From: Entomortierella parvispora E1425
Taxonomy: Eukaryota; Fungi; Mortierellomycota
NCBI GenBank assembly: GCA_020891255.1
Contig: BQFW01000008.1
Span: 1,302,001-1,366,000 of the forward strand
Direction of reading: 5' to 3'
DNA: 64,000 bases
Numbering within the stretch: the first letter of the stretch is position 1; the number at the start of each line of letters is the position of its first letter. The position numbers were made by a program, and so were the translations under genes. The notes beneath the pieces are model-generated. The model did no database searches and had not been told where the DNA came from. It saw only the letters and a program-made list of their open reading frames with translations. Below are positions 4,601 to 12,011 of this stretch, piece after piece.

Positions 4601-7510
4601 AATAGTATCTGTCTTATAGAAACGTCTGGATGAAGCCCTCCGAGAGCTTTTGGAGACATTCCGTTTGCCCGGAGAATCGCAGCAAATTGAACGTGTCATG
4701 GAGCTGTTTGCCGAGATTTATTTTGCCACCAAGCCTCGCTGCATTGCTTCCCAGGATGCTGCCTTCATTCTTGGATATGCCGTCGTCATGCTGAACACTG
4801 ACCAGCACAACAAGGGAGTGAAGGGCCGTATGACTCTTGCTCAGTTTGCAAAAAATCTGAAAGGCGTGAACAAGGGCGAAGATTTTGCTCCTGATTACCT
4901 CGCAGAGATTTACGAGGCGATCCGAAAGCGCGAGATTGTCTTGCCACAGGAGCACGAAGGTCAACTTGGATTTAACTATGCATGGAAGGAACTATTGCGC
5001 AGAGCCGAAACGGCGGGTCCGTTGGTTGTGTCGCATACCGCCATGTACGACAAGGAGCTCTTTGTTTCTTCATGGAAGCCCATCATGTCGGCCATCTCCT
5101 ATGGTAGGCCAACAGCTTTTTACGACCTCTACTCATTTTTTAACAACATCCATGGCCAAGTTTCACTAACTGGAATGTAAAACGACTTATAGCATTCAAC
5201 ATGGCTCAGGATGACGCGACTTTGCAGAAATCTCTTACCGGTTACTATCAATGCGCGATTCTTGCAGCTCATTACCAACTTCCAGATATTTTCGACCGCG
5301 TGACAATGTCGCTTGCCAGGATGACTGGACTGCTGGACACACCCAACAACCCCGCCGACAACCGTGATGTTGTTGTGGATGGTACAACCATCACTGTCAG
5401 TGATCTCGCAGTTCAGTTCGGAAAGAGCTATAAAGGACAGCTGGCAGCAGTTGTGGCCTTTGGCGTTGCAAATGAGCATGGCAACATGATCCGTACAGGA
5501 TGGCGCCCTATTCTGGAGATTATCAAGAATCTCTTTGTCAACTCACTTCTTCCAGGATCCATGTTGGAAGTTGAGGATTTCTTGGCGGGAACCACCATGA
5601 TCTTGCTCAAAGCGCCAGTGGTGCCCGAGGTCAAGGACAAGATTCGACAGGACAGCTCTTTGTTGTCCACTCTTTCTTCCTACCTGCTCTCGTCCTCGTA
5701 CGCTTACGAGACCGCAAGAGAAGAGCCAACGGCCGAGGAGATCGAGTCTACGCGTTGCACTGCTGACTGTGTGGCTGCCTGTCGACTGGAGGAGCTGTTT
5801 AGCGACATTCGTCTTCTCGAGGATTTGCCTCTGAGCCACCTCATGGAAGCGATCAAATTCGTGGCCGATGGAAACTCGGTGACAAAGAGCACAAAGCCTC
5901 CCACCCCATCCAAGTTGTACAACCCTGCCAGCGTTTTCTTCCTGGAGCTGATGATTAGTTTGACCGTCCAGAACCGATACCGCGTCCAAGCTCTGTGGCC
6001 AATTGTCTTTGAGCATCTGAGCGACATTATCCGTGAGGCTGGATCTCAAAGTGTACTTCTCGTCGAGAGAGCCGTGGTGGGTCTTTTGAGACTCTGCATC
6101 CGCCTTGCTCACAAGGACGACATGTCAAAGGAGGTCTTGGATGCATTGGATCTTCTTCTGGGTCTTCCCATCGACGTCGTACCAGAAGTTGCGGAGCAAA
6201 TGATGGCTGGTGTTTTGAACCTGCTCAAGGCAGACTCTTCGTGTGTTCGACCCAACCTTAACTGGGACGTGCTCTTTGCACTTCTTTCATCCACCTCCAA
6301 CCACCCCGAGGCCGCCAAGTACTCTTTCGAAGCGATCAGCATGTTCGTAGCTGAAAACGATGGAGAGAACGTCAGCGTGGAGAACTATGCAGATTGCGTC
6401 GATTTGCTCATCCGTTTCGCCGCAGCAGGCGCGATTGGAGCAGAGGGAGCTCTTAAGCAGGAGAGTGGACAGCGCGGTAACAAGAACCACATGTCCAAGG
6501 CGCAAACCAACGCTGTTGACCGTGCCAAGAAGGCGATCGAGATGCTCTACAAGTTGCATAGCCAGGCCCCACGTTTGATCACACAGTCCAAGATGAACCC
6601 CGAGCTTACCTGGTCCGCCTACTGGTTCCCCATCCTGGTCGGATTGACCCAGCAATGTTCCAACCCTTGCCGCGAGGTCCGCAACCATGCCATGATCTAT
6701 CTCCAGCGCGCTCTTTTGCTTCCAGAGATTGTCACAGATAAGATCACAGAGTGGGTGGTGGTCTTTGACAAGGTCCTGTTCAAGTTGCTGGAAGATCTTT
6801 TGAGACCCGAGGTAGTTCAACAGGACCCTGCAGGATTCGAGGAGACCCGAAGCAAAGCCTGTGCGATTGTTTGCAAGACCTTCTTGCATTACTACTTTCG
6901 ACTTTTGGAATGGGAGGGACTTCAAGCCCTCTGGATGAATGTCTTGGATTATATGGATGCATTTATGCAGACTGCCCAGAGCGACCAATTGGTAAGCGTC
7001 TTGATGTTGTTGTTCTGGTTTTGAGGTCTATTATTTCCAATATTTCTAGTTCTGACCTTTCCGCCATTTTTTTATCCCCCATCCTATCAGTACGAGGCTG
7101 TTCCCGAGTCGCTCAAGAACTGCCTTCTGGTCATGTCGACTTCTGATGCCTTCTCCGAGGTCACTGCCGGCCAGCCAGGCAGTCTCTGGAACGTGACATG
7201 GGCACGCATCAACAAGTTCTTGCCCAATTTGAAGGCAGAGATCTTTCCTTCCCAAAGTGCCAACGAGAGCAGCTCCTCCTATGCAGCATTGATGATGGGC
7301 GTAGGAAAGACATTGTTTTCGACAGAGTTGCCCAGGATGTCGACAGAACCTGTTCCCCCCGCCCCCGCCCCTTCCACTACTCTGCCACAAGAAACGGTTG
7401 AACCTAGCCCGGCAGGACATACCTCGGATGTGATCCAAGGATTGGAGGCAGTCATGGACATGTCCCAGCATCCCACCCATACCACTGAGGCCGAAGACAG
7501 TTTGCTATAA
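1621..7510 (+). CDS. GBF1: Sec7-domain ARF guanine nucleotide exchange factor, GBF1/Gea1-Gea2 family, multi-exon
   Basis: N-terminal DCB/HUS-type segments (HCKFEASDSVSDEIVLLKILQ; LWVNYDC) and the Sec7 catalytic motif FRLPGESQQIER. HDS-type C-terminus (CSNPCREVRNHAM). About 12 GT-AG introns join the ORF-track fragments; the last exon starts at 7091 and the stop is at 7510. Confidence 0.93.
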
Positions 7511-7553
7511 AGATAGTTTGTCACCAAAATATATAAATGAAAGGCAAAAAATA

Positions 7554-8219
7554 GGTGGCGACTTAAGGGTGTACTATGCACGTGCAGGGTCCATGTCTCA
7601 ACGAAGCGAGCGAGGCGCGGAGTTGGAAATTGGTTGGAATCTTGGTGATTCCATGATTCCACTCAGCATTCCATCAACATTCCATCACGATCCTACAGTA
7701 GCCTTCTTGGCTGGTCAGGTGAGTAGACTCTCTTCATGCATTGGCTCGACTGACCAAGTTCCAACACCGCATTTGTCGACGCGACGCATGATGCAATTTA
7801 GAGAGCGTTCAGATCTTCAGAGATGTGTGGCCCTTAACTCGCAGTGCCACCCTGCACACTTTTTGCCCCTCTCGTTCCTTCTTCCCTCTTCTTTCTTTCC
7901 TCCACTCTCTTCAGTCTCGCCTCTCGCCTCTCGCTCTCGGATCCTTTCTCGGCCGTCGCCTCCCTCGACTCAAGTTTAGGTGATTTCTTCATGGCCATTC
8001 AATTAATCAATTTTTCCATTCAATCGGCTTCAAGGTTGACGTCAAGGCCCCGCGCGGAAGCAAGATTCCCAAACCTTGGCTAGTTCATTCTCCTCATGAT
8101 TTACATTTGAAAACCTCGGACCGTCAAGCCAGCAAGTTGTCGACTTCGCTCTTGTCCCACCTTCTCTCCGCTCTCTGTTTGCCATAGAGCCCTGTCGCCA
8201 ACCATACTTTTGGTTTCAC
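7554..8219 (+). repeat. Left inverted-repeat arm, 666 bp
   Basis: Line-by-line comparison with the reverse complement of 9304-9969. Differences occur only at 8130, 8169 and 8173. Confidence 0.97.
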
Positions 8220-8684
8220 CTTCGCCCCTCATACTCATCCGGCCATTCGTCTCCCGTTTGATCGCTTCAACCCCATCGTGAAGACCCTCTGCCCCTTTTC
8301 AAGGTCTCCCGATGCACTCCTGATGCACTCTCACTCTCTACCTCCGCTCCTCTTCTTTCAAGTATCTGTTTCCATTCACCCAGAGTTATGACAATCCCCG
8401 TGGCCCCAAAGGCTAGATCTGGTGGCGTTTTTTAATGGCGGGGGCGGCCCGTGCGCTAAGAAAAACGCCTACCAGGTAATGTGACAACAGTTGGTTCTTG
8501 CATGCATTCCTTTAGGCACACTGCAATCCGCACAGATTGTCGAACGAAGGCGCCACCTGACGAGTGAACCCTCCCTGAAAGCTCGCTGCATTTAAAAGTT
8601 GATCGATTGAATGACCATGGGGAGATTGAGGAGATCACATTAAAGTGGAAAGTAAGAAGAATGGGAGCTAAGGAATGGCTAAGG

Positions 8685-8845
8685 AATGGCTAAGCAAAAC
8701 GCAAAACTGAATGCATCGAAATCTCGCAGCGAGCTTAGCCTCTAAGTAATGGCTAAGCAAAATGCAAAACTGAATGCATCGAAATCTCCCAATCACCTGA
8801 CTGGCTAAGGAATGGCTAAGCAAAATGCAAAACCGAATGCATCGA
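8685..8845 (+). repeat. Three direct repeats AATGGCTAAGCAAAAYGCAAAACYGAATGCATCGA(AATCTC) at exact 63-bp period
   Basis: Copies start at 8685, 8748 and 8811, with 22-bp spacers at 8726-8747 and 8789-8810. GGCTAAGGAAT 11-mer units precede the array and a degenerate partial copy lies at about 8873-8890. Confidence 0.92.
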
Positions 8846-9303
8846 GCTTAAGGTATTGGTCACGGCTACAGTAAACAAAATGCAGAACCGTGTGGTCATA
8901 GGCGAATGAATGACTGAATGGCTTCTGCGCTCAGTGTACAACTGATAGAATACAAAAGCCGCAGCCTCTATGGACCTCGGGCGTCGGTGACGATTCAGGA
9001 GCGGATGTACTGCCGCGTACGGCACCGTTGTTCATATTTGGACCTGAGCTCTCGCGGCCTTGTGTTAGACTCTAGGTCTGTTCTTGATCCACTCGTAAGA
9101 TGTTTTTTTGAATTATAACAGTTGAATTTGCGCTTGGTTCAAACGTCTTGCTGTCTGGACCGATGGTGACGGCATCATCTGTTAGGGTTGCCGACATCGT
9201 CACCATAAGGCATCATCTTATACCAATCACCATGACTTTGTGGGAATTGTCATGGTTTACGTAGCCCGTCCCACACAATGTGTGGATAGAGTGTGGACGG
9301 AGT

Positions 9304-9969
9304 GTGAAACCAAAAGTATGGTTGGCGACAGGGCTCTATGGCAAACAGAAAGCAGAGAGAAGGTGGGACAAGAGCGAAGTCGACAACTTGCTAGCTTGAC
9401 GGTCCGAGGTTTTCAAATGTAAATCATGAGGAGAATGAACTAGCCAAGGTTTGGGAATCTTGCTTCCGCGCGGGGCCTTGACGTCAACCTTGAAGCCGAT
9501 TGAATGGAAAAATTGATTAATTGAATGGCCATGAAGAAATCACCTAAACTTGAGTCGAGGGAGGCGACGGCCGAGAAAGGATCCGAGAGCGAGAGGCGAG
9601 AGGCGAGACTGAAGAGAGTGGAGGAAAGAAAGAAGAGGGAAGAAGGAACGAGAGGGGCAAAAAGTGTGCAGGGTGGCACTGCGAGTTAAGGGCCACACAT
9701 CTCTGAAGATCTGAACGCTCTCTAAATTGCATCATGCGTCGCGTCGACAAATGCGGTGTTGGAACTTGGTCAGTCGAGCCAATGCATGAAGAGAGTCTAC
9801 TCACCTGACCAGCCAAGAAGGCTACTGTAGGATCGTGATGGAATGTTGATGGAATGCTGAGTGGAATCATGGAATCACCAAGATTCCAACCAATTTCCAA
9901 CTCCGCGCCTCGCTCGCTTCGTTGAGACATGGACCCTGCACGTGCATAGTACACCCTTAAGTCGCCACC
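9304..9969 (-). repeat. Right inverted-repeat arm, 666 bp
   Basis: Reverse complement of 7554-8219. The ORF track shows identical peptides on opposite strands (7844..8083+ and 9440..9679-). Confidence 0.97.
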
Positions 9970-10091
9970 ACTTTGTCCACTGGCCCCTTAAGAGATGTAC
10001 GGCAGAAGAACCCGCGACCCTGGGAAACTTCAGCTTTTCACACTTTTCTTGACATCCCCCATTCACCACAAAGAAGAAGAAAAAGTTGAAA

Positions 10092-12011
<1,920 letters not shown>

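Follow-up and report, generated by a model that had tools for sequence, protein, structure and literature searches.

A candidate foldback-type repeat with long, near-identical arms between two housekeeping genes of Entomortierella parvispora

Introduction

How did a 2.4-kb segment bounded by 666-bp, near-perfect inverted arms come to lie between two housekeeping genes of the soil fungus Entomortierella parvispora, and are its arms the native ends of a transposon? The segment is found in a 64,000-nucleotide stretch of contig BQFW01000008.1 (strain E1425), which we analyzed as a whole and call the window; positions given below without a contig name are window positions. A preliminary description made from the bare sequence had seen either a young, non-autonomous member of a DNA-transposon family or an invertible segment whose core could flip by recombination between the arms. 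We compared the arms with each other, with the rest of the genome and with the corresponding locus in relatives, and followed the gene that a sister copy carries.

Results

Structure of the inverted repeat

A repeat search returned an inverted pair at 7549-8219 / 9304-9974, 99% complementary and separated by 1084 nt. When checked base by base, 7554-8219 matched the reverse complement of 9304-9969 at 663 of 666 positions, exactly as first described, and this pair is the sole inverted repeat of at least 60 nt in the 64-kb window. We refer to 7554-8219 (plus strand, 666 bp) as the left arm, to 9304-9969 (minus strand, 666 bp) as the right arm and to the 1084 bp between them (8220-9303) as the core, or middle domain. 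The arms account for 1332 of the 2416 bp of the segment (55%, the proportion reported earlier). The three arm mismatches (8130/9393, 8169/9354 and 8173/9350) are each C versus T, and all are confined to the inner 90 bp.

The locus in relatives and the element junctions

The upstream gene encodes a GBF1/Gea-type Sec7 exchange factor (Pfam PF23325, GBF1-like TPR). The stop codon of its last exon is at 7508-7510 on the plus strand, and the element starts 43 bp past it. Downstream lies the gene for a class III alcohol dehydrogenase (S-(hydroxymethyl)glutathione dehydrogenase), with its closest named matches in Mortierella hygrophila and Entomortierella lignicola. The inferred start codon of the dehydrogenase (10092-10094, plus strand) belongs to a 5-codon first exon followed by a GT intron and is conserved in a relative; the element ends 122 bp upstream of it. 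The gene apparently opens with a five-codon micro-exon (MTAGK) and an intron, seen at window 10092-10290 and also at L067:754-775.

Relatives were found by scanning JGI metagenome contigs with the Sec7 exon. One contig (L067, 1197 bp, ~80% DNA identity) aligned over its positions 1-576 with window 6929-7498 and over 641-1166 with window 9976-10501 and was thus alignable to within a few bases of both element ends. Its stop-to-ATG spacer measures 168 bp, compared with 165 bp for the window once 7554-9969 is taken out. Because the relative aligns up to both ends across so short a spacer, the whole repeat-bounded unit is lineage-specific extra DNA. The presence/absence polymorphism is that of an empty site in one relative at ~80% identity, and the alignment shows the segment to be, to all appearances, an insertion between two housekeeping genes, with a deletion in the lineage of this single relative as the alternative. 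In a second, more distant contig (L065), the same locus has a 745-bp spacer that shows no similarity to the element. The L065 spacer (L065:1352-2100) may contain another small gene on the opposite strand.

We found no target-site duplication: the window junctions have no direct repeat of 2-10 bp (flanks ...AAAAAATA, element, ACTTTGTCC...), and a duplication was likewise absent at the ends of the C3 copy described below. The last 7 nt of the right arm, CGCCACC (9963-9969, plus strand), do occur in L067, exactly at the predicted empty-site junction. This match could be junction microhomology, an excision footprint or chance, for which a rough estimate is ~1e-3.

A TTAA lies 9 nt inside each element end, followed by GGG at one end and preceded by CCC at the other. 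We considered a piggyBac- or Kolobok-like insertion into the TTAA of a 22-bp palindrome and rejected it, since the L067 junction contains neither a TTAA nor the 22-bp palindrome, and since sister copies also have the 9 nt that lie outside the TTAA, which therefore belong to the repeat.

The element occupies almost the whole of a spacer that measures 168 bp in the relative. Judged from an ancestral Sec7-dehydrogenase spacer of only ~165 bp, the dehydrogenase promoter must be very compact or overlap the 3′ end of the upstream gene. With the spacer nearly filled and the element ending 122 bp before a conserved start codon, the insertion may have rewired this promoter, and as a side effect the element could contribute promoter sequence or push it aside.

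A low-copy, modular repeat family

The preliminary description had proposed searching the genome with an arm, and this search did find diverged copies, at five other loci and with 70-87% identity: C3 971 kb, C3 896 kb, C7 2.69 Mb, C10 436 kb and C10 1.03 Mb. Together with the window, the repeat family is low-copy and modular, comprising six loci and eight conserved ends; beyond these six loci we found no DNA similarity to any other repeat of the genome. The window copy differs by 13-30% from every other copy, and the genome contains no close donor for it.

The best conserved part of the arm is its first ~120 bp, a terminal domain present at all eight ends. Within it, a 21-nt motif (7613-7633, plus strand; mirror copy 9890-9910, minus strand) is identical in 8/8 family ends. 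It has eight matches in the genome and none other at up to 2 mismatches, whereas a reversed control had 0, and an invariant run of 21 columns was attained in 227 of 100,000 column shuffles. In the JGI metagenomes the 21-mer had 0 matches.

Each arm also contains a degenerate hairpin module of ~300 bp (7554-7860; mirror copy 9663-9969), in which 7558-7569 pairs with 7831-7842, 7617-7634 with 7753-7770 and 7712-7723 with 7745-7756. The module occurs alone at C3:895,8xx, the C3 896 kb locus. An outer inverted pair, present in the C3 and C7 copies, lengthens it to a hairpin of ~620 nt, and the DNA fold z-score is -1.8 for the window module versus -7.6 for the 626-nt version in L034 (the C3 copy). 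A further arm segment, X (7864-8012, plus strand; mirror copy 9511-9659), has an inverted copy outside the hairpin module in the C3 and C7 copies.

Three loci out of the six are foldbacks with near-perfect arms, and no two of them share a register. The window arms span arm positions 1-666 (666 nt, 99.5%). Those of the C3 971 kb copy combine arm positions 1-127 with 372 bp lying outside position 1 (499 nt, 99.6%), and those of the C7 copy comprise the terminal domain and 63-bp repeats, with one block of 256 nt (100%) and another of 136 nt (98%). The outer ends of the window element are not a common family terminus, as homology runs outward past them in the C3, C7 and C10b copies.

Two other readings of the arms were examined. 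A candidate first exon running from an ATG to GTGAGT (7594-7719) would make the arms coding, and we rejected it on finding ACG or AAG in place of the ATG in four copies and a 17-nt deletion in the C3 copy. As for structured RNA, the element matched no Rfam family (E up to 1) and contains no tRNA.

The core holds a minisatellite and a pseudogene

The order of parts in the window is that of the C3 copy: arm, 94-bp block, 63-bp minisatellite, minus-strand gene and inverted end. The C3 copy is colinear over 7555-8037 and then over 8466-8559, the latter being a conserved spacer block of 94 bp on the plus strand that is 91% identical between the two. The minisatellite (8667-8867, plus strand) comprises 2.7-3 units of 63 bp and is preceded by 11-bp sub-repeats.

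The preliminary description saw no recognizable protein in the core. This has to be revised: we found the remnant of a cargo gene at 8921-9263 on the minus strand, corresponding to residues 44-179 of an intact 257-aa ORF in the C3 copy (L034:7602-8375:-). The fragment has 57-69% identity to the C3 ORF and contains four stops (2 TGA, 2 TAA), and an ORF at 8816-9025 (minus strand) has short peptide motifs in common with the same protein.

The 63-bp unit also forms free-standing arrays of 0.2-0.6 kb at at least 18 other loci (C12:676549-677089, C13:320312-320622, C11:1309658-1309915, C6:159841-160148 and ~14 more), which have no flanks in common with the foldback family. The element may have seeded this dispersed minisatellite, or the reverse. 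We considered the minisatellite as a lead to an autonomous partner and dropped it, the eight other arrays examined being isolated and without common ends; at the one array locus checked for transposase-like ORFs there were none. Two of the minisatellite loci, C11:1.309 Mb (L050:4281-6465) and C15:1.863 Mb (L053:4435-6057), have ~1.5 kb of flanking DNA that is 70-80% similar and may be another repeat or a duplicated intergenic region. The C3 copy further contains a 55-bp unit repeated 19 times in tandem, every repeat including a short, perfect palindrome (L034:5909-6970, that is, C3:971908-972969), and one degenerate 55-bp unit is present in the window at 9263-9303, adjoining the inner edge of the right arm.

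The cargo gene belongs to a zinc-finger family

The C3 copy is the sole gene-bearing copy, and its 257-aa ORF is a truncated member of a C2H2 family. Full-length paralogs of 513 aa on C9 (L041:718-2259) and 236 aa on C5 (L043:1438-2148) carry three extra N-terminal C2H2 fingers. A protein from a sister locus is 100% identical to EMPS_06937 of E. parvispora. A word search gave only three relatives, and an exhaustive profile search gave 134 clusters (E up to 1e-10), part of which match through the zinc fingers alone, and brought in no further domain. Named members of the family come from Mortierella, Podila, Entomortierella, Rhizomucor and Umbelopsis, a Mucoromycota-wide distribution.

Family members have three C2H2 fingers and a C-terminal domain of ~300 aa with a conserved RHLRSKFH motif and no Pfam model. 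Many of them lie on very short contigs, a hint of repeat association, and a 71-bp tandem array (3.8 units, L041:1-354) lies ~360 bp upstream of the C9 zinc-finger gene; tandem arrays seem to move along with the genes of the family.

Pfam found no domain in the 257-aa ORF and none besides C2H2 fingers in ten long family members. An alignment of five sequences had no invariant acidic residues and no acidic triad. A PDB sequence search gave matches limited to zinc fingers, a protein atlas yielded weak leads only, and the AlphaFold model is poor (pLDDT 50.7). With C2H2 fingers as the only domain and no invariant acidic residues, the cargo family gives no sign of a transposase, and by Pfam and this alignment none was seen in any of the six loci. 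The preliminary description had advised looking for longer copies that carry a transposase; the one copy with a gene holds the truncated C2H2-family gene instead.

One arm is ancestral and most of the other appears secondary

The C7 copy aligns straight over the boundary between left arm and core (8219/8220), and the C10a and C3 copies are also colinear there. As sister copies thus cross this boundary and continue unbroken into the core, the left arm is the ancestral one. In the C3 copy, no more than 133 bp of arm are present at the right end before the ATG of the gene (L034 8392-8508 matches window 9836-9968), and it is only this outer ~133 bp of the right arm that has a counterpart there. 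Cargo codons 1-43 are missing from the window, where arm positions 134-666 are found instead. Comparison with C3 thus points to one interpretation: over its inner ~530 bp, the right arm consists of left-arm sequence that was copied secondarily, in inverted orientation.

The two arms differ by 0.45%, compared with 13-30% between copies, which is about the difference of flanking non-coding DNA from that of the relative. The copy must therefore be old and its arms either young or homogenized. Of the three arm mismatches, C7 has the right-arm base at one and the left-arm base at two, which suggests that each arm has changed after the two had become identical.

We propose that the element would have arrived with short inverted ends of roughly 130 bp. 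During the repair of a later break within it, one short end would have invaded the other and DNA synthesis would have proceeded toward the interior, adding ~530 bp to the copy of the left arm and overwriting the first 43 codons of the cargo gene. Gene conversion from arm to arm would subsequently have held the arms at 99.5% identity while the copy drifted by 13-30%.

Discussion

With moderate confidence, we assign the segment to a modular, foldback-type repeat family of low copy number and regard it as a decayed, non-autonomous member whose arms were elongated secondarily. It is probably without function today, and a hairpin transcript or a fragile palindrome could be among its side effects. 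The earlier assignment to a DNA-transposon-like family as a non-autonomous member agrees with the absence of the segment from the relative's spacer and with the copies at five loci, but it finds no backing in a transposase or a target-site duplication. Likewise, "young" fits the arms only, which are 0.45% apart, and not the copy as a whole. Among the features of a Class II TIR transposon, terminal inverted repeats and an empty site were therefore seen, and a target-site duplication and a transposase partner were not.

The alternative that fares best, although we consider it doubtful, is that the segment was never a transposon but a captured fragment: a piece of a family copy, with its break at the hairpin-module base, that snapped back, was replicated as far as its template reached and was end-joined into a chromosomal break. 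Several of our observations would follow from it. The junctions have no target-site duplication, no transposase was found, and the 7-nt match between the right end and the empty site is as expected of microhomology-mediated joining. Moreover, both arms end at the same base while three sister copies run outward, and that base is also the base of the hairpin module. However, an origin in one step predicts a donor as close as the arms are to each other, and the nearest copy is only 79-87% identical, which makes the arms much more recent than the copy itself. There is also no microhomology at the inner junction (8219/9304), and the 7-mer could equally be an excision footprint or, at the rough estimate given above, chance.

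A functional inverted-repeat locus is improbable. The segment could be invertible, with a flipping core, or a transcribed hairpin-RNA gene with a 666-bp stem that silences the repeat family. Either process would be well served by near-perfect arms of 666 bp around a 1.1-kb loop, and, with the left arm beginning 43 bp past a stop codon, read-through from the upstream gene is conceivable. On the other hand, the core consists of a minisatellite and a pseudogene and holds nothing orientation-dependent, the ORFs between the two housekeeping genes include no recombinase, there is no Rfam match, and the locus is absent from the relative. The core contents and the missing recombinase also speak against the invertible segment of the preliminary description.

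Equally speculative is a mobile element that has hairpin ends and needs no transposase, moving through a snapped-back or single-stranded DNA intermediate, rebuilding its arms by hairpin-primed run-off synthesis and entering at breaks through microhomology. If true, it would account for the absent target-site duplication, the 7-nt junction match and the nested palindromes, as well as for near-perfect arms in different registers at three of the six loci.

Least of all do we believe in an artefact of assembly or polishing: Nanopore 1D data can include palindromic chimeric reads, short-read polishing can homogenize repeats, and the structure is known from one assembly alone, but the order of parts is colinear with an independent sister copy and the same sort of structure recurs at two further loci of the family. 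An artefact is unlikely because the assembly combines 409x Nanopore reads with Illumina polishing (PMC8759367), and the 2.4-kb segment is much shorter than the reads, has an asymmetric core and differs between its arms at three sites.

How does the foldback-type repeat that we favor compare with known elements? It resembles the TTAA-targeting piggyBac and Kolobok transposons in the TTAA 9 nt inside each end. For an element of that type, a duplicated TTAA and a single TTAA at the empty site are expected, whereas L067 has CGCCACC and no TTAA at the junction.

Long-TIR elements, such as Mutator-like elements and Galileo of the P superfamily, are closer in that they have TIRs of hundreds of base pairs, non-autonomous derivatives and a conserved terminal block that is a putative binding site. 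The window element differs from them in having no transposase partner and no duplication of the length seen in Mutator (9 bp), P (7-8 bp) or hAT (8 bp) elements.

For the growth of the arms, the closest parallels are host structures. Plastid inverted-repeat expansion, sex-chromosome palindromes and yeast palindromes primed by short inverted repeats are cases in which inverted repeats grow or are homogenized by recombinational repair. There, as here, a short repeat grows by copying its flank, the arms are far more alike than their age predicts, and the register varies among loci; the window element differs in being part of a dispersed repeat. A recombinational-repair mechanism is what we infer for the window arms, reasoning from the arrangement of the sister copies. 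Long perfect inverted repeats in the E. parvispora genome can accordingly be secondary overgrowths rather than native transposon ends. The current understanding of transposons is unchanged by this, and the element itself is a fairly ordinary genomic relic.

The foldback elements, FB of Drosophila and Tetris of D. virilis, have 8-10 bp target-site duplications (PMC4079207), which the window family does not. The window arms are also unique sequence with a nested hairpin instead of tandem sub-repeats; in the family, such sub-repeats are seen as 63-bp units in both C7 arms, and in the window that array is present once, in the core. The family further differs in being limited to six loci and in having one copy with a truncated host-type zinc-finger gene. 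FB-like elements are modular, with rearranged copies and with internal repeats that seed free arrays (PMC4079207). The likeness to them lies in arms that vary in length and make-up between copies and are near-identical within a copy, and in the plan of a terminal domain, tandem repeats and a variable middle, which is clearest in the C7 copy. It extends to the few complete and many rearranged copies, the lack of a transposase and the internal unit found in free arrays. In this company, the E. parvispora family would be an example from an early-diverging fungus of how a foldback originates, with its cargo gene lost, its end repeats lengthened and the intermediates visible in sister copies.
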